Shown here piece by piece: positions 5,260 to 50,256 of a stretch of 64,000 nt of DNA. The DNA comes from Paramoeba atlantica (taxonomy: Eukaryota; Protista; Discosea). The DNA lies in the NCBI GenBank assembly GCA_977017575.1, contig CDRNVI010000053.1, forward strand, positions 62,001 through 126,000, read 5' to 3'. Both the position numbers and the translations under genes were made by a program. Under the pieces are notes generated by a model, which did not search any database, was not told where the DNA came from, and saw only the letters and a list, made by a program, of their open reading frames with translations. Position 1 is the stretch's first letter. Every line of letters begins with the position of its first letter.

Positions 5260-7530
5260 ATGTCTACAAATTTTTTCTTGGTTACAGAAGCAAAACACGA
5301 TGCAGACGTTCGTGGTGTCACTTCGCACCCGTACGCTACAGGCGCGTTTCTTACCGCTTCGCGTGATAATACTGTACGCATGTGGACGACAATGAGTGAA
5401 GGCGGGCAGTGCCTCCTGGCACACAGCCACGTGCTTCATACCCATTATGTCTCCACGGTGATATGCTTTAAAGGTACCTGGAAATATTTTGCTGCTGAAG
5501 TCAGTGCGGAGACCAAAAAAGCTCTTTGGTTTAGTGCCTCTCATGACGAAACAGTTATTGGATATGAACCAGAAAGCGAACAGCTCGAAGTATTGCTTGA
5601 TGGGCACACGGGCGCAGTATCATGTTTAGCTGCTTTAGGCGATGCAATTGTTACTGGGAGTTGGGATGGAACCGCGATAATGTGGAATTTAGATGGTTCT
5701 ATTCGCGCGACGCTGAAGGGTCACACAAGCAGTGTGTTGTGTGTCGCATACCTTCCGGAGGCACAGAACTATGGAGCGAACATGAGCTGTATTCTCACTG
5801 GATCTGGTGATAAAACCATAATTGGATGGGATATGGGAGGGGAGAAACGTCGAGTTTACACTCATCACACGGACAGCGTTCAAGGACTATGTGAAATACC
5901 TAAAATTGGGTTCGCTTCCTGTGGTAATGACGCTAAAATTATTGTTGTTACCATTAAAGGCGACGTGTTATATACTTTGCACGGACATCAAAGTTTTGTT
6001 TATGACATCTGTGTTTTACCAAATACCGGGGAGATTTGCTCTGCCTCGGAAGATCGTACACTGCGAATTTGGAAGGGCACAACTTGCACACATTCTTTTG
6101 AACATCCCAAAACTGTCTGGTGTGTGTGCGCACTTGATGATCATACAGTGATTACAGGGTGTGCGGACGGTTACGCCCGAGTGTGGAGTCGAGATATCAC
6201 GCCCGGAGAGCCAATTGACATGCAGAATAATCTGAATGTATTGCCGACCACTAACTGTACTACTAGCATGGCGTGTGAGAATCCTATCCAGCTCAGTCAG
6301 ACAGTATCCCCTACACATTTCGACGATCACGCATGCATAACAGGAACCCCATCAATGGATAACTCAGATAACACTACCTCCTACCAAATGGGTCAGCCCC
6401 AGTCAGAATCGCATTCTGTGACATACGCCTCAACTAAGATACCATATGATGGAAAATTGTACGACTATGTTTTTGATGTTGAAGTGAATGGTGTGATTTT
6501 GAAATTACCATACAATATTGGAGAAAATCCTTACGAAGTCGCCTTAGAATTTATTCATCGACACAGCAATATGGGGCTCACGCAGAACGACCTGAACGAG
6601 GTTGTGCAATGGATAACACAGCATTCCCAATATACAGGAAATGAGCATGGAAAACTTACGGACGAGAAAGCAGAGGAATCAAATAAAAAAGGAGCGTCTA
6701 CAACACTTTTAGAACCTAGTTTCTTCGTACTAACAACCTACGTTGATACGAATTTCGAAGGTATTCGGAAAAAATTACTCAATATGAATGTACCAGGCGC
6801 CGACAAACTAGTGATGCAGCTTTCGGCCTCCAATGAGGCTTCTGGTAATACTCTGGTTGAGCTATGCCAAATAATACAGTCAACTCCCATATCTTCTCAA
6901 TATCCGCTCCTAGATCTTTTGAGACATGGAATGCTTTTATTGCATAGTGAAGATAGTTCCCTGCATTCTTTAATCCTTGAGACGGTGACTACAGTACTGG
7001 ATAACCAGGAGAATGAAAACCCTTTAAGAGATCTCATATGTCTTCGAATATTGGTGAACTATCTCGCACTTATGCAAAAAGAATTTCAGTCCGAAAATTT
7101 AGCACCTATCATTCGAGATCAATTACTAAGCACAAAGCTGAGGAGAAAAAGATGTAGGTCGAATTCGTTTGCACACAGAGAGACCTTCTACCAATTACTG
7201 CGAAACGCGAGCTTCTATATTGAAGATTGGCAAGAGGCGTCTACACCTGAACGAGCAGAGGGCACTGAGCAGCTGCAAGACTTAATTAAGAGTTTCCTGA
7301 GGGTCATTACTGATTGTTTATTACGCGAAAGCAATACCGAGCTAAAAGTTATTTTATTAAAAACATTGCTTTATATTTTTGTTCCCAAAGGAGACGACCA
7401 TCAAAGCATAACTTTGGAATGTGCAAAACGAGAGCTGACTTTTGACTATATTGAGACACTTATTCGAGATCCCAGTGAATTGGTAGGCAATCTTGCAAAG
7501 GAATTGCTAAAATTTAAACAGAAGCGGTGA
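5260..7530 (+). CDS. DOA1: Phospholipase A2-activating protein / Doa1-Ufd3 (WD40-PFU-PUL)
   Basis: WD40 repeats (GH...SGS.D) followed by the PFU signature YDGKLYDYVFDVEVNGVILKLPYNIGENPYEVA and a helical C-terminus. Confidence 0.9.
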   Translation: MSTNFFLVTEAKHDADVRGVTSHPYATGAFLTASRDNTVRMWTTMSEGGQCLLAHSHVLHTHYVSTVICFKGTWKYFAAEVSAETKKALWFSASHDETVIGYEPESEQLEVLLDGHTGAVSCLAALGDAIVTGSWDGTAIMWNLDGSIRATLKGHTSSVLCVAYLPEAQNYGANMSCILTGSGDKTIIGWDMGGEKRRVYTHHTDSVQGLCEIPKIGFASCGNDAKIIVVTIKGDVLYTLHGHQSFVYDICVLPNTGEICSASEDRTLRIWKGTTCTHSFEHPKTVWCVCALDDHTVITGCADGYARVWSRDITPGEPIDMQNNLNVLPTTNCTTSMACENPIQLSQTVSPTHFDDHACITGTPSMDNSDNTTSYQMGQPQSESHSVTYASTKIPYDGKLYDYVFDVEVNGVILKLPYNIGENPYEVALEFIHRHSNMGLTQNDLNEVVQWITQHSQYTGNEHGKLTDEKAEESNKKGASTTLLEPSFFVLTTYVDTNFEGIRKKLLNMNVPGADKLVMQLSASNEASGNTLVELCQIIQSTPISSQYPLLDLLRHGMLLLHSEDSSLHSLILETVTTVLDNQENENPLRDLICLRILVNYLALMQKEFQSENLAPIIRDQLLSTKLRRKRCRSNSFAHRETFYQLLRNASFYIEDWQEASTPERAEGTEQLQDLIKSFLRVITDCLLRESNTELKVILLKTLLYIFVPKGDDHQSITLECAKRELTFDYIETLIRDPSELVGNLAKELLKFKQKR

Positions 7531-7618: not shown

Positions 7619-7966
7619 ATGTTTTGTTGTAAATGTTGTAATTTTGTTGTTTATAGTACACAAAATTATAAACAAATTTTATGCATGGCTATTTTTGCGT
7701 GCGTGCGATGTAATTATGCATACGAATGGACAGTGAGTAATTCGTATAAACGAACAATTGCGAGTCGTATGGATCATTGCGTCAAATGCAACCGAGTTTC
7801 TCGTTTTCAAATCTTGGCCATTGGAACCATGCACGGCCGAATGTGGGACAAACCTGCAAATTTTCCTCTTGTACAAAACTCCGTATTGTGGTGGAGGAAA
7901 CAACACCTCAATGGTAAACATGTGACAGAGCCGCTTTCAGAAATCACGCCTGAAGAAACGAAATAA
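7619..7966 (+). CDS. Possible small zinc-ribbon protein (CxxC...CxxC)
   Basis: CVRC...CVKC pair; short, may be spurious. Confidence 0.3.
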   Translation: MFCCKCCNFVVYSTQNYKQILCMAIFACVRCNYAYEWTVSNSYKRTIASRMDHCVKCNRVSRFQILAIGTMHGRMWDKPANFPLVQNSVLWWRKQHLNGKHVTEPLSEITPEETK

Positions 7967-8160
7967 TTCTGAGACATAAGGTTAGATTTGCTTTGAGATT
8001 TTTTGATGTTTTCTCCATCTGTGGAAGCATGCTCATGTGTAGTTTGTAACCGTACGGTGTAAAGTTCGCATATTACGCGAAACGAATTAGGTAGTAGATT
8101 AATAGTAGATATTGGTACTGATCAACACTCTATGACGACATTTAGTTTTCCCAAACCATC

Positions 8161-23745: not shown

Positions 23746-24399
23746 GGGTTCGGGTAGGATAAAAAAACTTATAAAAAACTTATAATTGAGGTACAGTGCG
23801 TGGTGTTATTACGGGACGGGTATTTAAGGGACAATATAGGGGTGGGGTCATACCTTTGGAATGGGACAAAAGAACTACAAGTGTAGCGCCCAAGTAACAG
23901 AGCGCTCAAGTTATCAGGCACACATAAAAATGTATTTGTAAGATAACTGATCGAAAAGGAGATAAATAAAGGAAGATAATTGAAAGAAAAAGGTACTGTG
24001 ACCCCCCCTTTAATACGGACAGATTTTTGGACTTTGTCCATATTAAAGGGGGGGTGCTCATGGCGCAGAAAATGACGCTATTTCTTACCCGACAAAATAC
24101 AATTAAAAAAAAAATCGCGTCGCTTCGCGGCGCCCGTCTTTCTCGAGAAAGGCGAACAAAAGGAATCTCTGGAACAGAAGAAAAAGAAGCCCCCTGAAGA
24201 ATAATGCGGTGATGGGATGTTGAGGAGTGAAGGGCGGACAGGGGGGATGTCTGGGTTGGGTGACTGACATGTAGGCATTTAAGTAGCAAAGCAATTAAAA
24301 GAAAAACATTATGAAAGATGATACAATGTGAAAGAGTTAATTGTCTAGTTAAGTACGATTATTGAGGGAGATACTACTCCCTCGCTACCCAGTAATAAT

Positions 24400-24598
24400 A
24401 AAATTTGGCCCGAAATTTCGCCCGAAATTTGGCCCGACAAACATTTTTCCTGAAAAAGTTTTTTTCGAAAAGAACGAAATGCAGCACCACAAATAGATAG
24501 TTTTAGAAAAGAAAAACGCAACTTTTGGACGACTCGAAATTTGGCCCGAAATTTCGTCCAAAATCTCGCCCGAAATTTGACCCGAAATTTGGCCCGAC
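24400..24598. repeat. 12-bp tandem repeat AAATTTGGCCCG (two clusters)
   Basis: Seen directly. Confidence 0.9.
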
Positions 24599-24652: not shown

Positions 24653-25160
24653 AGGTATAAAGGACGGAGATACTAAGAGCACATCGAAAAAAAATTTCTA
24701 AAACGTAAACGATTTTCATTGAAAAATTTAAAAAGATTGAAGAAAAAAATATTAAATTTAATGAAAAATATCAAAAAGGAAAGATTCGAGAAAGAAAAAG
24801 TATCTCCCATTTCATCTTGAATGGTCACCGAGAAGAAAAATGGGAGATACTTTTTCTTTCTCGAATTTTTCCTTTTTGATATTTTTCTCCCATTTCATCT
24901 TGAATGGTCACCGAGAAGAAAAATGGGAGATACTTTTTCTTTCTCGAATTTTTCCTTTTTGATATTTTTCTCCCATTTCATCTTGAATGGTCACCGAGAA
25001 GAAAAATGGGAGATACTTTTTCTTTCTCGAATTTTTCCTTTTTGATATTTTTCATTAATATTTTTTCTTCAATCTTTTGAAAATTTTCAATGAAAATCTT
25101 TTTCGTTTTAGAAATTTTCTTTTCGATGTGCTCTTAGTATCTCCCTTGTCCTTTATACCT
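24653..25160. mobile_element. Foldback/MITE-like element: long AT-rich inverted arms with three internal 83-bp direct repeats
   Basis: AGGTATAAAGGAC..GAGATACTAAGAGCACATCGAA is inverted at the right end; repeat units start at 24804, 24887, 24970. Confidence 0.85.
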
Positions 25161-25359
25161 TAGGTCGAAATGGGTTTGCGCCGTCGTCGGGCAGCTGGAT
25201 ATAGCATCAGCTAGCGTCTCGAGCACCAAATTGTGGCGATAGGTGTATCTTCCTTGTTCCAGGGAGACTCGACAGCCAGCAAATATGTGGCGGATAGTTT
25301 GGACTTCCTCATTGCAAATGGGACACTTCGTGTTTACATGTGTGTTTAGGCCCCATCTA

Positions 25360-26917
25360 CAGGGGTGAAAATACCATGGTGGGGGGGATCTAAAATTCGT
25401 AAAATTTGTCCAATTTTGGAAAATAATAGAGCGTTCGAGAGCTCTCGCAGAGTTGTATGTTTTAAGATAGGCAGTTTGCGGGGGTTAGGGGGGTACCCCC
25501 CTTTGATGGAAGGGTCAAAAACACGATTTGCAAATTTGAAAAACTGTAAAAAATGGTCAAAAATTACCCTTAATACCCACAGGAAGACCCGTTTCGCTCA
25601 ATAACGATGCGACAACGCTTGCGGAAACTGCTCATCGTGTTAATACATTCTTGCTTGCGTTCTGATTGTAATCTTTCGAACGCTGTCTCAATTGCCGATA
25701 CTAATTCAGCCCGATTCTTGGGTCGAAGATCATTTTTGATCCTGTCCATGGTCCCCCAAAGGTTTTCAATGGTGTTTAAATCGGGGGATTTTGCAGGCCA
25801 AGAGAGTACATTAATACCTTCGTTGCGAAAGGTTGTTCGCGCAGAATTATGAACAGGACAATTATCCATTGCAACGACCCCAGATGGGTGGCGCCTCAAA
25901 TAATTTAAAAGTCCTTTGCGCTTCTTCATGGCGTCATTGAAAACATCCCCTGTTACAGTTACTTTTCGGCCGGAAGGGTCGTGGGAGGGAAAAATGTGTA
26001 GATGAAATCCATGATTTAAACTGACCCCCATCCACACCATGACGCCGTTCCCTCCATACCAAGGTTCTAGCTCTCCCTGCTGTTCCTTGGCGGGGTCAGT
26101 CTTCCGGCAAAGGTAAGTAATTTTGTTTCGTCCCCTACCGCAAGTAAACTTCTTCTCATCGCAGAAAACAATTTGTCTCAGTTGGGTATCTGACCAAGTG
26201 AGCATCTCAGAACAAAAATGCACTCGTTTCCTCTTGTGTTCATCGGTCAGTGCGGGCTTTCTTTTTAAAGTTCGCATGATCATACCATGGCTCTTCATGG
26301 CGTTAACCAAAGTTGGTCTTGAACACTGAAATCCAAGAGAAAGCACAACTCTATGGAGTGCACACCAGTTCTCAATCCCGTACGGGAGGTCACGGTATCC
26401 CTCATCAATGAGGCGGATAGCTGCTTCGTGCAGCGCAGGGGTACTGACAGGAGATGGGCGTGAAATAGGAGAGCTTTCCACGTCTCCAGTGTTCTCATAG
26501 CGTATCACAAGACGTTTTACTGTATTTTCGTGGACGCCGAAGTTTTGGGCTGTCCGAGAATAGGACCCTGTCTCAAGATAATCTGAGACAAGAAGCATAC
26601 GGTGACTTGGTATCACCCGTGCGGGGGAGGAATAGGACCTGTCGCTGAGTACACCACGTGAGGTTCGGGAACGAATCCGTTTCTGGGGCATATAGTGCTA
26701 ATATTGACTGAAAAACAGCTAAAAACTGAAAAAACGTAAATTTGGGCAAGAAAAAAAATCATGATTTTTTTTGTCTCATCGTTTCATGTTGAGTCACAGG
26801 CCGCAAATAGTGCTAAAACATACAACTCTGTGAGAGCTCTCGAATGCGCTATTACTTTCCAAAATTGGATAATTTTTACGAATTTTAGACCCCCCCACCA
26901 CGAGGTTTTCACCCCTG
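25360..26917 (-). mobile_element. Tc1/IS630-family transposon with intact transposase, TA target duplication
   Basis: ~105-bp imperfect TIRs starting CAGGGGTGAAAA; TA at 25358-25359 and 26918-26919. Confidence 0.95.
25570..26691 (-). CDS. Tc1-like transposase, DD32E
   Basis: Uninterrupted 373 aa; HTH, VFCDEKKF, AMDNCPVH, WPAKSPDLNTIENLW. Confidence 0.92.
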   Translation of the reverse strand: MPQKRIRSRTSRGVLSDRSYSSPARVIPSHRMLLVSDYLETGSYSRTAQNFGVHENTVKRLVIRYENTGDVESSPISRPSPVSTPALHEAAIRLIDEGYRDLPYGIENWCALHRVVLSLGFQCSRPTLVNAMKSHGMIMRTLKRKPALTDEHKRKRVHFCSEMLTWSDTQLRQIVFCDEKKFTCGRGRNKITYLCRKTDPAKEQQGELEPWYGGNGVMVWMGVSLNHGFHLHIFPSHDPSGRKVTVTGDVFNDAMKKRKGLLNYLRRHPSGVVAMDNCPVHNSARTTFRNEGINVLSWPAKSPDLNTIENLWGTMDRIKNDLRPKNRAELVSAIETAFERLQSERKQECINTMSSFRKRCRIVIERNGSSCGY

Positions 26918-27868
26918 TATGTAGTGCTGCGCGGGTAGGAAGAGGCGTCTGTGTGAGAACTGAAGCTGTGAAGCGGGACAACGACTCGCTCTTTATGTTG
27001 CATAGCGCAGATGCGAAATCCTTCGCCAGGTCACTTTCTGAGGCCAATTGGAACCATTGGCAGGCCACGGATGTGCGTCGCTGCACGGCCTCTAGCAGGT
27101 GGCGCTCATGTTGGGTGTTGATGGTGCGTTGAAGGGCTGCTGGGTCGTCGCGCACCTCGTATAGCTGGGTAAGCGGCCTGATTTGGCCTGACGAGCGCTT
27201 CTTTTGTTCATTTTGGATGCGCTGTCGTAGTGCGTGCTGTACAGCTGGGTCTCTGGATTTTTCCATTTGTGTTAGAGCTATGGCTGTGCACTGAAGCCAT
27301 AGCTTCGACATGCTGGTTAGATTCCAACCACTCTCCGAGTAAATAAGTTCACTTGTTGCGGTTTTAGCCATTTTAAGCCATTTCCGAATATGGTTGGTGG
27401 CCATCTTTTGGAGCCTTAAGACGTGGCTGAATGAGAGTACGGGGTTCCAATCCAATCCAAATCCAAAAAGGCCGATTTACATCGGCTGATAAAACTACTA
27501 TTTTGTTTTTCGTGAAGACACCTTCCTCTTAGGTGAATCTTCCCTCTTTTTATCCACTTTTTCATTAAGCACTCTTAATTGTTCATAACTTTTATCTTAC
27601 GTTTTATCTTACGAGTACGGGGTTGATGGTAAAGGCATAACGTAGCCGAGATGTGATAGCGTGGTTATAGATCCAGAGGCGGGCTGGGGTATCGAAGGCG
27701 CTATGGGTGATATTGTGGAGCCATGTGCGGAGTTTTGTCCGTAGCGTCTTGAAGAGAACCTTTCCTTGTTGCGCGCCAGGTGCAAGAGTCATACCGAGGA
27801 AGGTGCTGCCGCGGTCACATATATGAGGTATTGGTTCGCTAGAGGCCATGATCCTCGGTCGGTGCGTC

Positions 27869-28957
27869 TTATAACCCCCATCTTTTACGGCCATACGCTG
27901 AAGGCGGCACTTCTTGACGTTTAGACACCCCCATCATTGAGAGTACCCTCACAAGCACATTCGTCGCGTTCTGCATTTCTTCAGGGGTGTTCGTGAGCAT
28001 TGTCAGATCATCCGCGAAGGCCTTCAGGAAGGTTTCTGAATCATTCCAGACGATTTCATACTTTGGAAAACTCGATCTAAGGAATCGTAAGACCACCTCC
28101 ATTGCAATCAGGAACAGCACCGGTGAAAGCGTGTCTCCTTGTAATACGCCACGCTGCACTGGGATGTGGTTTGTGAGTCCTTCAGCGCATTTTACTTGCA
28201 GAGGTGCTCCGTCGTACAACGCACGAATATACGCCACGATACGGGGCGAGATTCGGGCCCACTGTAGTGCGTCGAATAGGACGCTATGCGGAAGGGCGCC
28301 AAAAGCATTCTTCAAGCCAAACTGCCCTAGACAGTATTGTCGCTTGTGTCGGCGTTGGAATTCCAGGAGTTCGCAGAGTGACTGCGTATGTTCGATGGTA
28401 CCGTTCACCCGCGGAAGGAAACCTTTCTGTATGGTAGTGTCGATTACACCAGAAGAAGTAACGTGGGCTAATACCCGATGACTTATGATAGAGTGGAATA
28501 GCTTCCCCAGGAAGCTAGTCAGACCGATGGGCCTCCAGTTTTCCAGCGCGCGCGAGGGACCCCCTTTGTGAATGAGAAGTGTTATAGCTTGTTTCCATGA
28601 TTCGAGGCAGACGCTAAACTTCAGGAGTCCGTTGAAAACTTGGGCCAAGAAGGGGTGTAGGGCGACACATCGTTTCAGAATAGCGTTACTAATGGTGTCG
28701 GCTCCTGGAGCAGCTGAAGGACGTTTCGAGGATACCGCTATGGCAATCGAGGCACCATTGATTTCTTCCCATTGCATCTCTGTCTCGGTTGCTGGTCCAA
28801 AGAAGTCTCGTGGGGGCAGGTGATGCTCCGTGTGGGGCTTGCTCATCGACTCCTTAAAGTGGCTTTCGATTTCGAGATTTTTTTCAAAGAAATCTTTCGA
28901 TTTCTCCAATAGGGCAGTCTGGTCCTTGCTTCTTACGTTGCTCCGCTGCTTTTTCAT
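27869..28957 (-). pseudogene. Non-LTR reverse transcriptase domain
   Basis: Canonical RT blocks, but the first catalytic Asp appears replaced (QFGLKNAFG instead of xDLxNAFG) and the frame breaks after the FADD block. Confidence 0.9.
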
Positions 28958-29939
28958 GGTTGTCCAGGCATTCCCCCGAGGCAGTCCATGGGTTTCTCTG
29001 GAATCGAGTCGCGGCCTATCGTTGCGCCATCTCGAGACGCTGTAGTGAACTCTCTTCTAGATACGTTTTATGCAGTTTTCCTGCCTCTTTGATTTTCGCC
29101 TTCAGCTCGTTTCGCGCGCCTCGACCGTGTGTATATCGTAGGGACCTCTTGAGTTGTCGGACGTGACCTGCTAGGGTTGCAGCAGACCGTTCGACTGCGG
29201 TTGGCCTTGATTTGCGCCCTGCCGAAACCCTGTGTGACCGGATCCGAAATGCACCAACGGCGTCAATGTGGCAGGCTACTTCATGGGCGGTAACTGCGAT
29301 GCAGCCTGACAGCAGCTTTGTCTGTTCGAGGGCCTCCTCTGAGTTCCGGGCGGGGCATATAAACTTATGGCACCGGTCTAACGCTCGTTGTTCGGTAAGG
29401 TGCCATTGTTCGGTGGTGAAGTGGATCATAACCCGACCTCCTTCGATAGTGCGTAGCTTACTCATGAGGCTAGCAGCTGTTTCTTCCTGCTCGGTCAAGG
29501 TTGGGGTTTCTGTCTGGGCTCGGGGGCGGCGTGGGTTTTGCGTGGGCCTCTGGGTGCGGAGCATTGGCTGTTCCCCACTGCTTTGGTGTCTACCACCTTC
29601 CGGTACACGCTGGGACCTAAATGCTCCCGTCCTTGGTGCGGCCTGCGAATTTTCGTTCGTGACTGCCCTTCCAGTCTCTGTTCCTCCTGTGGGGCTGGAG
29701 AAGGCCTGAGTGCTGATGTTGAGGGGGTTCCCCTAGTTTCCTCTCCGTTGTTCAATCCTTGCTCTGTGTTCCTGTGTTGCGACTCATCTGCGGTGTTACT
29801 TTGTGGTCGGGGTCTTGAGTCGCATGGCGGAGCTGTAATACTAGGTTCGGTTGGAATAGGGGAGGCGCTGTTCCTTGTGCCGACTCGGTCCTGAGCGGAG
29901 AGGAGACGTGTCTGGTCCCTTGAACTCGCAGTTGGTGTC

Positions 29940-30460
29940 CCAGGTGGTGTTGTAGAGTACATAATTTGTTAATGACGTGGAGGGCACATTCGTTGGACAT
30001 GGGTGACTGCTGTGGAACGGAGGCATATTTAATGCGTTATATTATAATATAATATTATAATATTAATATTTTTATATGCGTTTTATGATTGCAGATGTCC
30101 CTACAATCTGCCGAAGGTGTGAAGCGAAACTATTGAGGAAATCCCCACGAGCATGAGGGGAATACGTTTGGTAACTATTGTAAGCAGTCATATCACAACG
30201 GTGATAATCTACAAGGACGTAGTAACCATTAAACAGTAAAATAGAAACCACACGGCGCACTGATGTAATGTATTTCTTGGGCTGGCGACCTTGACCAAGT
30301 AAGAGCCGTGTTTTGCCTGTATCAAGAAACAGTATGTTTTTGTCGGCATCGGGTAACATGCGATACGTCCTCATGACATTTTCGCATATTTGATCTACAG
30401 CATGTGTTGGAAGACAACATTTCGGTCGCCGATACTTTCGCCACTCTGTGTCCAGGTCTA
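29940..30460 (-). pseudogene. Ulp1/SENP-like (C48) cysteine protease domain, interrupted by a short AT-rich insertion
   Basis: NGYYVLV...AYNS then, after the 30033-30076 insert, IKYASVPQQSPMSNECALHVINKL (QQ...C motif). Confidence 0.7.
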
Positions 30461-30599
30461 CAATAGAGCTCGGAGAATCTGGCACACATATGTTCCGGTT
30501 TCTTGGTTTCACACGTACTCTTGGATTCACATGTGTCTTCATGGGAGTTTAGCAACGCTCCATGATCTTCCGGGGAATGTAGTTGAGATTGAGGCTGTG

Positions 30600-31371
30600 T
30601 ATTTGGATGCTCTACCCAAGGATTTTCGGTGGCAGGTCGCTTGATGTATGTGCGGGCGGCTTTTAGTATTGCTTCGCGATGAGTTTTCCACACTAGCGTG
30701 TGTGCTTCTATCCATTCGAGGACAAGATATCGGCTTACTTTTTCTTTGTTGTTGTGAAGACGCCATTCGCTGAGCAATTCATTGTATTGTCGCTTAAACA
30801 AGCGATTAAATACACGGTCATGAATTTGTATTGCCTTCGTGCAACCCCCAGGAATTGTATGAGGGTCGGAATTTTCAGGAATGTCGTCAGTGCGATGTCC
30901 TGAGCAATCATCTGTGATTATTGCTGTCGAAGACCTTTCCTGTGAAAAGGGTAAATAGCTCTTCAGCATGCGAGGATAAATGTCCTCCTTGACCTCTGGG
31001 CATGCTTCACCATTTCCTTGTAAATCGTGGAATTTTCCCGCGACTTCGCGTTATGCTCGAAAATTACAGTCGGGTTAAGGGGACATACCTCGTCAGACCC
31101 GAAATCATAGATGGCGGCCAAAAAAGCAGTCACCGTTTCCTTCGGATTTGTGTCGACAACCTTTGGTTGAGGACTCCCAATTTAGACAAGAGTATATCCT
31201 TGCACCTCCCCGTTTACGAACATCGCTGTTTCGTCTCCAAAAAGAGCAAACCGGTAATGTCGTACCGAATTTTGCACGTAGAGCTTCTCAGCCCAGCGCG
31301 AAATGCGGGTTTCAACGTTAGCGGGAGCAAGACACTGTATTCTGTCCCAGCGCCTCCAGACCCATCCGTAG
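30600..31371 (-). pseudogene. pogo/Tigger-like DDE transposase remnant
   Basis: Manual translation gives FGDETAMF...KETVTAFLAAI...PTVIF; ORF 30322-30969 gives DDCSGHRT and IPGGCTKAIQIHDRVFNRLFK. Confidence 0.8.
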
Positions 31372-31373
31372 TA

Positions 31374-31748
31374 CTGTGCCCCCCCTAGTTATCTGTCACA
31401 CGTCACCCCCCTAGTTATCTGTCACTTTTTGGCACTTCGAATTGTTTTTTCGTCGACTACCCCCCCTAGTTATGTGTCACCTTTTAAAAATAGATAAAAT
31501 ACTTTTTTCCAAAAAAAACATGAAATGAAAGAAAAAAATTCCTTTTTTGTTCCAAGCGAATGGTCGTGCGTGGTGCTATTATAAACCGTTTCTGTAATTC
31601 CATGTTCTGACTTTTTTTTTGTGACAGACCCCCTCCCTAGTTATCTGTCGCACACTGATCCGCCTAGTTATCTGTCACACCCCTACCCCCCCCTAGTTAT
31701 CTGTCACCTTTTCGCGAAAAGTAGTGACAGTAGGGGGGGGGGGTACAG
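31374..31748. mobile_element. MITE with TA|CTGT(G/A)CCCCCC termini and internal CCCCCTAGTTATCTGTCAC repeats
   Basis: TA at 31372-31373 and 31749-31750; inverted termini; ~6-7 internal repeat copies. Confidence 0.8.
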
Positions 31749-31824
31749 TATCTTCGAAAACGAAAATACGTATCCTCCAAGGCATTCATTGAAGTTAAAC
31801 CAGTGTTTAACCGTATCATATCTA

Positions 31825-32010
31825 CAGTGGTGATCAGCGTCTTTTACCCCCCCCCTACAGGTCTTGTATTTTGTCCGATTTTGGAAATATTTGGTATACC
31901 ACCGTTTTTCGACCCAATCATTCCGAATCCGAGGTCCTTTTTATTCGAGCGATCCCCTACCCCCCCTAGCCAGGTAGGGGTCAAAAAAGCTAATTACAAC
32001 TTTTTTGAGT
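31825..32010 (+). mobile_element. Left end of the CAGTGG-terminus MITE family (also 34035, 59442)
   Basis: TA|CAGTGG...CCCCCTACAGGTCTTGTATTTTGTCCGATTTTGGAAATATTTGG shared with the other copies. Confidence 0.8.
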
Positions 32011-33009: not shown

Positions 33010-33999
33010 ATGGATTCAATAGCTGTATTCGGCGGTGCTGGATATATTGGTTCACACATCGTGCAAGAATTGTGTAAGTCAAAATTCGTGACCGTTGTTG
33101 ATAACTTGACTACAGGCAACCGCGACATGCTACCTTCTCAAGTTACATTCTTTGAGGGAGACGTCCGCGATAAGAAATTCTTGGCATCCTTTTTTCAAAA
33201 AATCCGTCCACAAGCTGTAATTCATGTGTGCGATCGTAGTAACGTTCAAGAGAGTGTCACAGACCCACTTCTCTATTATGAAAATAACGTAGTTGGTATG
33301 GTAACATTGCTACAAGAGATGCGTTTGTGTGGATGCAGTCAGTTAGTTTATAGTTCATCAGCTGCCGCATACGGAGACATTGACAGCAATGAAATTAACA
33401 TGCTTCCTGTTAACTCCCCACTTCGACCGAAAAATCCGTATGGTGAATGCAAAGCGACAGTAGAGCGACTCTTGCATACATGTGGTACAGCTTATGGCCT
33501 AAACTTTGTGGCCTTCCGCTTCTTTAATGTAGCTGGTGCCCATGAATCTGGCCTTTTGGGAGAAATCCATTCACCCCAAACGCATTTAATTCCAGTCTTA
33601 CTGGAGGTGGCTGCCGGGGTTCGTGATAGCGCTTCCTTGTACGGAACGGATTATCCGACGCGGGACGGAACATGCGTGCGAGACTTCGTTCACGTATGTG
33701 ACGTAGCTCATGCGCACCTTGATGCGCTTTGCTACTTACGAAACGGAGGATTATCCACGTGCATAAACTTGGGAAGTGGAATGGGATACACCGTACGAGA
33801 GGTTATCAAAATCGTACAGTCTATTACGGGATGCAGTATTCGTGTAGATGAGAAGAATAGACGACCAGGTGACCCAACGAGGCTTGTTGCGTGTGTCAAA
33901 GACGCTAAAAAGATATTACGTTGGTCGCCTCGCCATTCATCTCTGCCTGAGATTGTGGCAAGTGCGTGGAAATTCTATTCCTCCTATCGTAAACATTAG
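33010..33999 (+). CDS. galE: UDP-glucose 4-epimerase
   Basis: GGAGYIG, YYENN, SSSAAAYG, PYGECK (YxxxK), FRFFNVAGAH, THLIP, RDGTCVRDFVHV, RRPGDP. Confidence 0.95.
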   Translation: MDSIAVFGGAGYIGSHIVQELCKSKFVTVVDNLTTGNRDMLPSQVTFFEGDVRDKKFLASFFQKIRPQAVIHVCDRSNVQESVTDPLLYYENNVVGMVTLLQEMRLCGCSQLVYSSSAAAYGDIDSNEINMLPVNSPLRPKNPYGECKATVERLLHTCGTAYGLNFVAFRFFNVAGAHESGLLGEIHSPQTHLIPVLLEVAAGVRDSASLYGTDYPTRDGTCVRDFVHVCDVAHAHLDALCYLRNGGLSTCINLGSGMGYTVREVIKIVQSITGCSIRVDEKNRRPGDPTRLVACVKDAKKILRWSPRHSSLPEIVASAWKFYSSYRKH

Positions 34000-36528: not shown

Positions 36529-37141
36529 TTGATAAAAATAGAAAGGAACTAATACCAGCTAACATAAAGAATAGCTCACGTAAAATTACGAAATTTGTCG
36601 AATTTTACTAAAAGAAAACTAAAATTCGGGCCGCTTCACGCCGCGTGTATTTCAGGGGAATAAAGATACTGTGACCCCCCCTTTTAATATGGACAGGGGG
36701 TATCCCCCCCTTTTTTATGGACAAATCCGACCGCGCGCCGCGGAGCGGCGCCAATTTTGTTTTGCCACTTTTTCGTTTTTTTCCTCTTTTTTAGGGTATC
36801 TGTAGCTAGCTAATTTCGTCAGCTTTCAAATCACACAAAGGAGAAAAGGGGACGAACTGAGCTTAATAATTCCCGGCTCACGAAAAGTGACCCCCCACTT
36901 TGTTGCATTTTTCAGATCTCATCAAGAGAATTTTGTGCGCCCAGGACGGGCTAAAACAAAGAACAATGAGCTTGTTTAGATTACAATTACTGTGCCCCCC
37001 ACTTATTTGTAGTAGTAGTAGTAGTAACTTTGAATTGCTTAATTTAGAAGTAATTAAATGCAGTAGTACGTATTGCCGAGTAACATTGATATAGTATCAC
37101 CCAGTAACATTGAATGTATGCCTTGTTTATTCTTTTTTTTT

Positions 37142-37525
37142 TCAGAAATCAGGAGGAACCCATTGCTCGCTAAGATTCCAACGAAATAGAACATACTTGT
37201 CTGATACCTTAAACAAAACACGATACATGTTATTTACTACATGTATAGCACAAGTGTTTTCGCCGGGACTTTGCTGTGGATATGCTACATTTCTTATCTC
37301 ATAAGCTTCGGGGGGCACGTTGAAATGCTTGCTCATACGCTCTTTGAATTTTATGATGTTGTCATGATATGACTCAGATGCATATCCGACAAAACTATCG
37401 TATATCACGCACCCTTGAATATAAACAAGAATGAAATGATATGCGTAGTAGAGGCATGCAAAAATGGTCGTGCTACGCGATAGCTGTCGTGGAAACTTAT
37501 CTTGTCCAAGAATGAAAGAAATCAT
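37142..37525 (-). CDS. Ulp1/SENP-like protease domain with intact H-D-Q-C residues (element-borne)
   Basis: YHFILV...IYDS...YPQQSPGENTCAIHVVNN. Confidence 0.7.
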   Translation of the reverse strand: MISFILGQDKFPRQLSRSTTIFACLYYAYHFILVYIQGCVIYDSFVGYASESYHDNIIKFKERMSKHFNVPPEAYEIRNVAYPQQSPGENTCAIHVVNNMYRVLFKVSDKYVLFRWNLSEQWVPPDF

Positions 37526-39650: not shown

Positions 39651-40959
39651 GGCAACGTGCCTGTAGTTTCATCTTACAAATGTGTAGCATTGGTACAATA
39701 TTACGTACTTAACATCAAAAATCTTTTGATGATAACAACATTGGATACATGCAGTGCCCCTACAATCCTACACAAGGGCAAACGTTTCTTCCTCTTTTCC
39801 TTTCCTACTCTCTATCTCTCTCCCCGGCTCTCGCCATTGACCCGCTGCAAACGCGGCAGCCGGCTTCACAAGGATTTCAGTCATGGGACAGCCCCATCTA
39901 CCTCGGCCCCTAGAGGACAATCTGCCTCCCCTCTACGGGGGAGGTTCTTCAACACTGTCTTCGTCCTGTTGAACATTTACAAACTCTGTAATCTTGCGTT
40001 GCTTAGCGGGCATTCTGTTTTGTAATAGCGTATGCGATGCCCGATCGATGTTATCGCGTTCCCGTGCATTTCGCGTACTTTGTGCCATTGGGGGTACCAC
40101 ATCGTCTGGCTCCTCAAACTGATAATCAATGTTTCTAATGGAAGCTGTGCAAGGATGAAGGTAACCTAATCTGTTAAATGCAGCAAGAACAACATCCGGA
40201 CGAGATAAGGAGGACTCCATAACATTCCGAAGATCCTGCAGAACTATCTTCTGTCTCAGTTTCATTGGAGTCATCTGTTCCAGAAGATTCGCTTGCTTCT
40301 GTTTCAAAAGAATTTTCCTCAGATCTTGCTTCGTTGAGTGTCGCATCACTTGTGCTAATATTGGAAGAATCATCATCTGACAACGCGTCCGCTCAAACAG
40401 AGCTTGCTTCACCGTCGCTCGGAACAACACAATATGTTATTCCCCTTGAAGTTTCCCGATGAAATTCCTTCTGCAATTCAAAAAGATTTTGCAAATCAAG
40501 ACGGTGATCCGCCAAGGTCATTTCAAAAAATTGTGAACAATAAAAAATGTGAACAATAACCGTCGGGGGGGGGTTACATGGTTTATGAGGACAAGGGTTG
40601 CTAAAAATCACCACACTTTCTCACGAGGAGATGACGACCGCTGAGTTAAATCCACGTATTCTCGACATTCTGAGAACAATGTTCTTTGGTTCTGAGAACC
40701 AGAACGTGTTCTTGTTCTCAGAACAACAATGTATATTATACCCCAAACTGGGTATTTGGGTCATGGACAACCACTGTAGTACACTGAAATATACATTTTC
40801 GAGACCCACAAAATGTCTAAAACGCCTAAAAATAGCGTTTTCTTGCTCATTTCGCACCGACGAAACGAAGAGGAAATTTTTGTTTTTGCTATTCGTTTTG
40901 GGTACATTTTCATGTTCATCCCGAATAATACAGGCAGGCGAAAATTGTTGTGCTACGTG

Positions 40960-41250
40960 ATAGCGGGGAAATTTTCCCTGTCCTAAAATGATGAAAGGGG
41001 TTTCATCAATGCTCAAGAATTCAACATCATCAGAATGATTCTTTGTCTGATAAACTGTTAGCACCTTTTCGCACAAATGGTCAAGCTTGTGCGGCGGAAC
41101 CATAGTCGACTTGCAACGCAATGACTTCCATTCATCAGTTATTGAAGCAAGAGGTGCAGCTGAAGCAGGAGGTACCTTTGATTTAGCACTGCTTAAAGCC
41201 GATCGGATGTTGGCATGAACAACGATAAGGGGAACAGCTGTTTTCACGAC
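40960..41250 (-). pseudogene. N-terminal part of the Ulp1-like protease family
   Basis: EWKSLR...VPPHKLDHLCEKV...IILGQGKFPR aligns with EWRKYR...LPTHAVDQICENV...LLLGQGRQPK (30300-30450) and FILGQDKFPR (37500). Confidence 0.6.
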
Positions 41251-41757
41251 TACTGGCTTGGAATCGTCAGAGGCAAGTGCTCTGATCGCTCGATCATCTT
41301 CCTTCCTGTTGGAGGTTCGGGGTCTCCTTTAACCCTGCTAAACCGGTCCAAAGCCCGGGGCTATGTAAAAAAAATACATAGAAAGGTGATGGAAGGATTT
41401 GCAACCTTATGAAAAGTGTAAAATTGAAAATTGTTGTAGTTGTTTTGCTCTGTATCACTTTATTTATACATGCATGATAATTCAAGGTCGTGCAGCGCGG
41501 ACATTGTAGCCGTAAACAAAAATATACTTTATGTTGTACTTTAAATGTGCTTTATATTGTGTGTGGATGATATACAGTTACGTGTAGTATACTGTATATT
41601 ATAGTGTATTTACATGCATATGAAGATACATACATACATACGTGTATATACACGTATGCACACATGTGAGTTAAAGAAAAAGGAGGAGGGGGGGACGCGT
41701 CCGACCCAAGGACTTTGTCCCTAGCAGGGTTAAAGGAGACCCCGAACCTCCAACAGG

Positions 41758-49879: not shown

Positions 49880-50256
49880 ACCTTCCGTTACCCCATTCCG
49901 GGAGCCAACCCCGTTCTCTTCTATCCCAAGTGTACGCGGTATTGCATTACGAATATCAGTATATTCTCCTGCATATCAAGGGTCATATTCTGAATATTTA
50001 TGACAGTGTTTTTGAACATGCCGCAGTAGCACGTCGGGATAACGTCAAAATTTTCCGAAACAGGCTTATTTCTCACTTAGAAATACGCTCAAAGGATCCT
50101 TACTTGATGTACTTTGCCAAATGCCCTCAGCAAATGCCTGGTGAAAATACGTGCGGACTAGACGTAATAAATAACTTATGTTGTTGTGTATTTGGTGTCG
50201 AAAAAGAGTATTTTAGCAGATCAACACTATGCGATTGGTCTCCACACCTTAACTAG
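49880..50256 (+). pseudogene. Ulp1/SENP-like protease domain nested within Merlin
   Basis: YQYILL...IYDS...CPQQMPGENTCGLDVINNL; catalytic His apparently replaced by Gln. Confidence 0.7.

Follow-up and report, generated by a model that had tools for sequence, protein, structure and literature searches.

The window analyzed here is a 64,000-nucleotide stretch of Paramoeba atlantica DNA (G000:C53:62001-126000, from an assembly of 45.7 Mb in 248 contigs). Its minus strand carries, in order, a remnant of a pogo-type DDE transposase (31825–30592), a remnant of an Ulp1-like protease (30542–29953), and the reverse transcriptase (RT) of a retrotransposon without long terminal repeats, or non-LTR retrotransposon (29951–25155). 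The locus is very probably a pile of nested dead transposons, in which a truncated R2-like retrotransposon lies inside the tail of a decayed transposon, here called pogo-Ulp1. As judged from sequence, the DDE transposase and the Ulp1-like domain are a real fusion within one cut-and-paste transposon. No polyprotein composed of DDE, protease, and RT is encoded here, now or ever.

The collinear order of the three domains on the minus strand had been proposed from the DNA letters and their translations, and it was borne out by tblastn searches of the window with two intact relatives from the same genome, a 721-amino acid pogo-Ulp1 protein (L016:3620-5785) and a 1466-amino acid non-LTR protein (L026:2929-7329), as well as by a Pfam match to RVT_1 in the open reading frame (ORF) at 27869–28957 (E 1.7e-20). 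The boundaries differ in part from those first drawn. The original prediction placed the DDE domain at 31371–30600; the domain is indeed present, but its real start lies farther upstream, at 31825, beyond a 374-bp miniature inverted-repeat transposable element (MITE). Likewise, a CCHC motif does follow the RT, as had been claimed, but it is found at 25358–25155, outside of 27869–31371 and past a 1.56-kb Tc1/mariner insertion. What had been read as a micro-insertion is a 31-bp AT-rich palindrome (30046–30076), which is absent from the paralogue on contig C52. The RT part of the locus has a GC content of 53%, as compared to 44.5% for the pogo part. In the order of the minus strand, the features are as follows.

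31748–31825, minus strand: transposase residues 152–177 (tblastn); the first 151 codons were not found.
31373–31747: MITE of 374 bp that interrupts the transposase frame, with a TA duplication and with ends reading CTGT(A/G)CCCC...; a copy on C37 is without it and joins 31747 to 31373.
30592–31376, minus strand: pogo-type DDE catalytic region, residues 176–452 (176–309 at 31376–30975 and 303–452 at 31047–30592), 65–78% identical by tblastn, with DD30D readable, one frameshift, and a stop at 31184.
29953–30542, minus strand: Ulp1-like protease remnant, residues 462–641 (462–614 at 30542–30081 and 618–641 at 30024–29953), from tblastn and motif reading, with the AT palindrome at 30046–30076.
27619–29951, minus strand: RT element from a truncated start (residue ~330/426) to residue 1094, comprising a linker of low complexity followed by the pre-RT and RT domains; it has two or more frameshifts plus a stop at 29018 (RVT_1; tblastn 43–71%).
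27446–27598: dispersed repeat of ~150 bp in the RT element, recurring at 93–97% identity on other contigs.
26919–27445, minus strand: post-RT part (thumb/linker) of the RT element, to residue ~1268 (tblastn, 62% identity, E 6e-68).
25359–26918, minus strand: Tc1/mariner element within the RT element; it has 83-bp terminal inverted repeats (TIRs) and an intact 373-amino acid transposase at 25570–26691 (inverted repeat; DDE_3, HTH_Tnp_Tc3_2).
25155–25358, minus strand: CCHC zinc knuckle of the RT element, residues 1269–1336 (tblastn, 62% identity, E 4e-25); the restriction-like endonuclease (RLE) domain beyond it is missing.
24655–25150: MITE with ~30-bp (up to ~90-bp) inverted ends, in the RT element after the CCHC motif (inverted repeats, sequence reading, TA flanks).
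24360–24537: short MITE-like dispersed repeat situated at the RT block's 3′ junction, with no fewer than 40 copies (73–92% identity on many contigs).
23994–24363, minus strand: 3′ untranslated/terminal part of the pogo-Ulp1 copy; C52/C8 match it at 93% identity and have it ~250 bp past the protease stop codon.
23994–24015, minus strand: 3′ TIR of the family A (pogo-Ulp1) copy, whose last letters are ...GGTCACAG, followed by a TA duplication; it fits the TIR pattern of the family exactly, where chance would give 0 matches.

The pogo-Ulp1 copy thus extends from 23994 to at least 31825, its coding pieces falling in frames -2, -1, -3, -1, and -3 with the single stop listed above. For the RT element, residues 426–1336 of the 1466-amino acid relative were aligned at 29663–26919 and 25358–25155, in frames -1, -2, -3, and -1, with stops at 29018 and 27479.

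Junctions of the retrotransposon block

The nesting is most directly seen by comparing the window with paralogues of its pogo-Ulp1 copy (family A). The paralogue on C52 is 96% identical to window 30694–29952 and then continues for 497 bp, which comprise the protease C-terminus, a stop codon, and a 3′ untranslated region (UTR), before rejoining the window at 24363–23993 and ending at the TIR, with no RT in between. C8 carries the same locus as C52 on a second contig (99.4–99.7% identical over 10 kb). Because C52/C8 runs on through the end of the protease to 24363 without RT, the RT block is best understood as an insertion. Its 5′ junction falls between 29952 and 29951, and the 5.6 kb between 29951 and 24364 stand in place of 497 bp of the pogo-Ulp1 copy. 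In a further copy, on C56, window 30692 is joined directly to 24112–23994; the endpoint shared by C52, C8, and C56 is window 23993/23994. One of two options offered by the original prediction, namely that a NeSL-like element had inserted into a pogo copy, was right in that a retroelement inserted into a pogo copy, but wrong as to the protease, which belongs to the pogo transposase.

Several results weigh against this account. The RT block has neither a target duplication nor a 3′ tail, the RT element has lost its 3′ end, and the host element has lost 497 bp; insertion followed by local deletion is therefore inferred rather than seen. A search with the TIR pattern found no 5′ TIR for the window's pogo-Ulp1 copy, and the assembly contains no close paralogue of the window's RT family from which the ends of that element could be defined. 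In the window's own ORF pieces, Pfam detected RVT_1 and the Tc1 transposase only, and no DDE_1 or Peptidase_C48. The intact 721-amino acid ORF likewise gave nothing in Pfam, neither DDE_1 nor Peptidase_C48, and BLASTP failed to align it significantly (E 0.044) with a canonical pogo transposase from this genome. The domain names DDE and Ulp1 given earlier hold up through homologues, motifs, and predicted folds (see below), but the two Pfam models are silent on the window pieces and on the 721-amino acid relative. An Rfam scan of the window at the gathering threshold yielded no match.

The absence of a target duplication and a 3′ tail, the truncation of the RT at both ends, the loss of 497 bp of the host, and the presence of a MITE exactly at the 3′ junction would also suit a different history, in which the RT fragment did not reach the pogo copy by retrotransposition and a deletion or rearrangement joined neighboring dead elements. 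We consider this improbable. The flanks of the RT block belong to one pogo copy, are in the right order and orientation, and are 497 bp apart in the paralogue. Insertion with a later local deletion gives exactly this layout, whereas two independent rearrangements would otherwise be needed.

For the nested insertion, we propose the following sequence of events. The host element was a pogo-type transposon, which in intact relatives encodes one protein, with a predicted N-terminal paired helix-turn-helix (HTH), a DD30D core, and a C-terminal Ulp1/SENP-like cysteine protease. Its TIRs, TA duplications, and near-identical copies indicate that such an element moves through TIR recognition and insertion at TA. 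The predicted protease might act on the transposase itself, or on host chromatin or repair factors where transposition takes place, by removing SUMO (or a ubiquitin-like modifier related to it). A 5′-truncated R2-like copy would then have landed in the codons just past the catalytic Cys of the protease, in the same orientation by chance. Later changes probably comprised the insertion of the Tc1/mariner element and of three MITEs, as well as a deletion that took the endonuclease end of the RT element along with 497 bp from the host element.

The Tc1/mariner insertion splits the RT element just ahead of the CCHC motif. Its terminus recurs at 97–100% identity on many contigs, and the family therefore looks recently active. 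Three perfect 83-bp tandem units (24803–25053) lie inside the MITE at 24655–25150, and repeats related to the 374-bp MITE are also present in L016. On the allelic contig C93, the pogo-Ulp1 linker contains one more Tc1-like element, 1765 bp in length (L013, 751–2515; equivalent to window 30487), which has long TIRs as well as a TA duplication; this is an insertion polymorphism between haplotypes.

The breakpoints of two independent family A fragments lie no more than 2 bp apart, at a CTAG: C56 (L017 6447) joins 30692 to 24112, and C52/C8 (L014 8154) starts at 30694. No common flank or transposon end accounts for these near-coincident breaks (30692–30694). An 11-base match between the 3′ flank of C56 and the 5′ flank of C52 is at the level of chance (E 1.1), and the 370 bp upstream of the C52 fragment were rejected as a transposon end, being single-locus sequence.

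The transposase–protease fusion in intact relatives

A DNA search of the whole assembly identified a sister family (family B) with 68% nucleotide identity to the window copy. Family B copies on C4, C43, and C45 are 98–99% identical over 2.94 kb between sharp shared ends. The family starts with TA followed by CTGTGACCCC... and ends with ...GGGGTCACAG followed by TA, having ~27-bp inverted ends and a TA duplication at six loci. Copies on C44, C30, and C1, which are different loci, have a common 535-bp internal deletion; a non-autonomous derivative has therefore been mobilized. The C4 copy contains one uninterrupted frame of 721 amino acids, which is followed by a stop, a 3′ UTR, and a TIR. The DDE motifs of this ORF are D223 (FGDET), D344 (TDDFTGH), and D375 (QIHD), a DD30D arrangement whose columns are conserved across 21 homologues. 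These are followed by a Pro/Glu/Ser-rich linker, and then by H567, D582, Q623, and C630. In a third family (family C, on C63 and C26), the layout is the same and the frames, also intact, are ~730 amino acids long; the protease segment has at least 97 matches genome-wide.

Between families, synonymous divergence is saturated (pS 0.82–0.87), while nonsynonymous divergence (pN) is 0.19 for the DDE core, 0.24–0.34 for the protease, and 0.56 for the linker. With pN well under the saturated pS, the protease has been kept by selection as the families diverged. A search for other copies in which the junction between DDE and protease is in an open frame had been suggested as a check, and the junction does recur, in the intact frames of families B and C. 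It had also been reasoned that pogo copies ending without the protease would speak against a composite element; what was found instead is that the intact pogo-Ulp1 relatives carry the protease in the frame of the DDE domain.

The assignment of the transposase core to the DDE_1 type, within the pogo superfamily (ITm group), comes from homologues, motifs, and the predicted fold. A HMMER search against 1.84 billion representatives returned just 67 matches. DDE_1 (PF03184) was detected in 15 of 21 aligned homologues (best E 2.4e-17), and is carried by P0006 (39% identical) and P0002 (70%); HTH_Tnp_Tc5 was detected in one of the 21. A protein word-index search gave only two near relatives, probably from the same organism, and a repeat with P0038 as the query was of no further use. 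For residues 1–470, an AlphaFold model (predicted local distance difference test score, pLDDT, 78.6) matched the full-length Mos1 transposase (E 5e-5), and also the catalytic domains of SETMAR and Sleeping Beauty. The N-terminus of the model has helical bundles at 53–96 and 125–178, with a match to CENP-B(1–129) at a probability of 0.95 but an E of 0.13.

The C-terminal domain is assigned, on the basis of structure prediction, to the Ulp1/SENP-like fold (Peptidase C48, clan CE), and is thus a predicted protease. A model of this domain (pLDDT 74.8, core >85) gave 49 matches in the PDB at E <= 0.001 by Foldseek (best E 1.3e-5, probability 1.00); among the matches listed, all are Ulp1, Ulp2, SENP1/2/3/5/7, NEDP1, or bacterial CE-clan effector proteases. 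A profile of the domain also found Ulp2 in the PDB (E 0.0096). Among homologues at 21–50% identity, the columns for Asp-Ser, Gln, Asn, and Cys do not vary. His, Asp, the oxyanion Gln, and Cys occur in the Ulp1/SENP order in the intact ORF and show conservation in homologues of that identity range. In the window copy this order is lost, as the catalytic residues have decayed (His to Tyr, Asp to Asn); the C52 paralogue keeps both. Pfam gives no PF02902 hit in the 721-amino acid ORF or the C52 protease ORF; just two proteins, P0038 (23 bits) and P0048 (31.6 bits), both of them remote homologues, score above the gathering level.

P0038 (715 amino acids) contains DDE_1 (49.6 bits) along with Peptidase_C48, both over the Pfam cut-offs, in one protein. 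P0038 and P0006 (784 amino acids), both taken from other data sets, share the two-domain layout of pogo-Ulp1. By language-model features (score 0.91), the closest ESM Atlas cluster is annotated as 'Ubiquitin-like protease family profile domain-containing protein'; it has 64 members, mostly from Basidiomycota, with DDE_1 in 69% and Peptidase_C48 in 53%. The combination of DDE_1 and Peptidase_C48 is therefore already present in databases. The cluster shares this combination with pogo-Ulp1, but its representative is 1151 amino acids in length as compared to 721, and the likeness is one of language-model features rather than of alignment. These proteins may be an independent fusion.

Other sequences in the genome resemble one or the other half of the fusion. 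An intact canonical pogo transposase of 459 amino acids with no protease domain (L026 7850–9229, minus strand; DDE_1, E 1.3e-16) is located 520 bp downstream of an R2-like element, from which it follows that protease-less pogo families coexist in the genome. In L016, a second, diverged protease-like ORF (Peptidase_C48 weak, E 0.067) and an N-terminal remnant resembling the start of the transposase occur at 7004–7483 and 7715–8089, both on the minus strand; the ORF is inverted and 1.2 kb from the intact C4 element. In the window itself, Ulp1-like remnants that are 27–33% identical to the family B protease are found at 37154–37516 (minus strand), 40951–41265 (minus strand), and 49900–50244 (plus strand), with no adjoining match to the DDE part of the query, and another TIR-like match to the pogo-Ulp1 end is found at 36667–36688. 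Beside the transposon pile is an uninterrupted ORF of 329 amino acids (33010–33999, plus strand) that reads like a UDP-glucose 4-epimerase of the GalE type.

The R2-like element and its intact relatives

The RT family of the window occurs at one locus only, C53 and the allelic contig C93 (99.7–100% identical), and the piece found there lacks the first ~330–425 and the last 130 codons of the 1466-amino acid ORF. The intact relatives are elements of 4889 bp with their own 5′ leader and one 1466-amino acid ORF, their copies being 99% identical. The encoded protein has RVT_1 (E 1.2e-31), zf-RVT, and a C-terminal restriction-like endonuclease region, and aligns with the R2 structures 9nl3 and 9dou over residues 712–1445. 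It contains no protease, no DDE, and no apurinic endonuclease (APE) domain. The closest relative of the window RT, on C58, has the same layout and no protease. The family is thus an R2-like, RLE-bearing non-LTR retrotransposon with RT, CCHC, and endonuclease and without APE, of which the window fragment keeps RT and CCHC only. A second observation that had been named beforehand as telling against a composite, RT copies that start without a DDE domain, is what these intact relatives provide.

The N-termini of the intact R2-like relatives (L026 2929–4200; L025 3414–4916) begin with four Cys/His repeats of the form C-x-H-x-C-x2-K-x2-C-x-H-x-C-C-K. These repeats are unnamed in Pfam and, going by their sequence, are candidates for an N-terminal DNA-binding region unusual for an RLE element. 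Partial tandem copies of the first 16–18 bases of the R2-like element precede the full-length element at L026 2500–2560.

Proteases do occur in retrotransposons of this kind. NeSL families and Utopia-1_TSP have an N-terminal Ulp1-like protease upstream of the RT (PMC4640811), as the original prediction had said of NeSL-1, and the RT here is in the same RLE-bearing group. A NeSL- or Utopia-like retrotransposon with its own N-terminal Ulp1, inserted beside or into a pogo DDE remnant, would place the three domains as observed, but we judge it very unlikely. The window protease is 49–67% identical to, and collinear with, the protease of the intact pogo fusion ORF, the protease of C52/C8 is followed by its own stop, 3′ UTR, and pogo TIR, and the intact RT relatives start with the four Cys/His repeats and have no protease.

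A true composite mobile unit, with DDE, Ulp1, and RT forming a polyprotein or an operon-like array, would explain why the three domains lie in order on one strand with few stops and why, as was remarked at the outset and still stands, no TIR or tail separates DDE from protease, but it has almost no chance of being correct, given that the junction with the RT is confined to a single locus (C53, allelic C93), that C52/C8 and all copies of families B and C finish with a stop, 3′ UTR, and TIR and no RT, that the RT piece is incomplete at both termini, and that the intact RT relatives are self-contained 4.9-kb elements. The other option of the original prediction, a new composite element, therefore survives for DDE and protease, which share intact fusion frames, but not for DDE and RT, which meet at a single locus with the RT truncated at both ends. 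Had a non-LTR polyprotein turned out to include a DDE transposase, the element would have belonged to a new class; at this locus the idea is not real, and the question is closed. What remains is a pogo-type transposase with an Ulp1-like domain under purifying selection and with recently mobile copies.

Comparison with known elements

The retrotransposon shares with R2-type elements the order of RT, CCHC, and restriction-like endonuclease and the absence of APE. It differs from these in that the N-terminus of its intact relatives consists of four Cys/His-rich repeats rather than the usual zinc finger and Myb motifs, and in that the window copy is a fragment. The resemblance to NeSL-1 and Utopia-1_TSP, in which an Ulp1-like protease likewise precedes an RLE-group RT on one strand, is superficial. 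In the window the protease forms the last part of the pogo ORF, whereas intact members of the RT family are without a protease. With no Ulp1 in its own ORF, the window RT is not a protease-bearing element of the NeSL/Utopia type.

Pogo-Ulp1 has in common with the pogo superfamily (Tigger, pogoR, Fot, Passer, Lemi, and Mover) a DDE_1-type core, TA duplication, short TIRs, and a single ORF; a paired-HTH region with a CENP-B-like fold may also be present at its N-terminus. A survey of pogo elements reported DD29-56D spacing and TA duplications (PMC7386202), and the DD30D of pogo-Ulp1 falls inside this range. Unlike known pogo elements, pogo-Ulp1 has a C-terminal Ulp1-like protease of ~240 residues, and its sequence is too diverged for direct detection by Pfam DDE_1. 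The words 'protease', 'Ulp', and 'SUMO' appear nowhere in the text of the survey, and full-text literature searches found no paper describing a pogo-Ulp1 (DDE_1 + Peptidase_C48) fusion. We tentatively suggest, at somewhat less than even odds, that pogo-Ulp1 is a distinct and still active branch of pogo, in which the SUMO-protease-like domain is required and catalytically active, and that it has scattered relatives (P0006, P0038, and perhaps the fungal proteins with DDE_1 and C48). If so, this branch would be a tractable system for asking why unrelated transposons (Mutator-like elements, Ginger1, and pogo) repeatedly recruit Ulp1. As a small element with a single ORF, pogo-Ulp1 is suited to testing the role of deSUMOylation in transposition.

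An Ulp1 (or OTU) domain is known from the C-terminus of Ginger1 transposases, and Ulp1 occurs as well on Mutator-like elements (PMC2836005). As in these, the Ulp1 domain of pogo-Ulp1 is located C-terminally on a cut-and-paste DDE transposase and belongs to multi-copy elements with TIRs. However, Ginger1 is Gypsy-integrase-like and the Mutator-like elements belong to MuDR, whereas the transposase here is of the pogo/ITm superfamily, and the target duplications and TIRs differ as well. That a third, unrelated superfamily carries Ulp1 adds weight to the view that cut-and-paste transposition benefits from deSUMOylation or from the loss of some related modifier.

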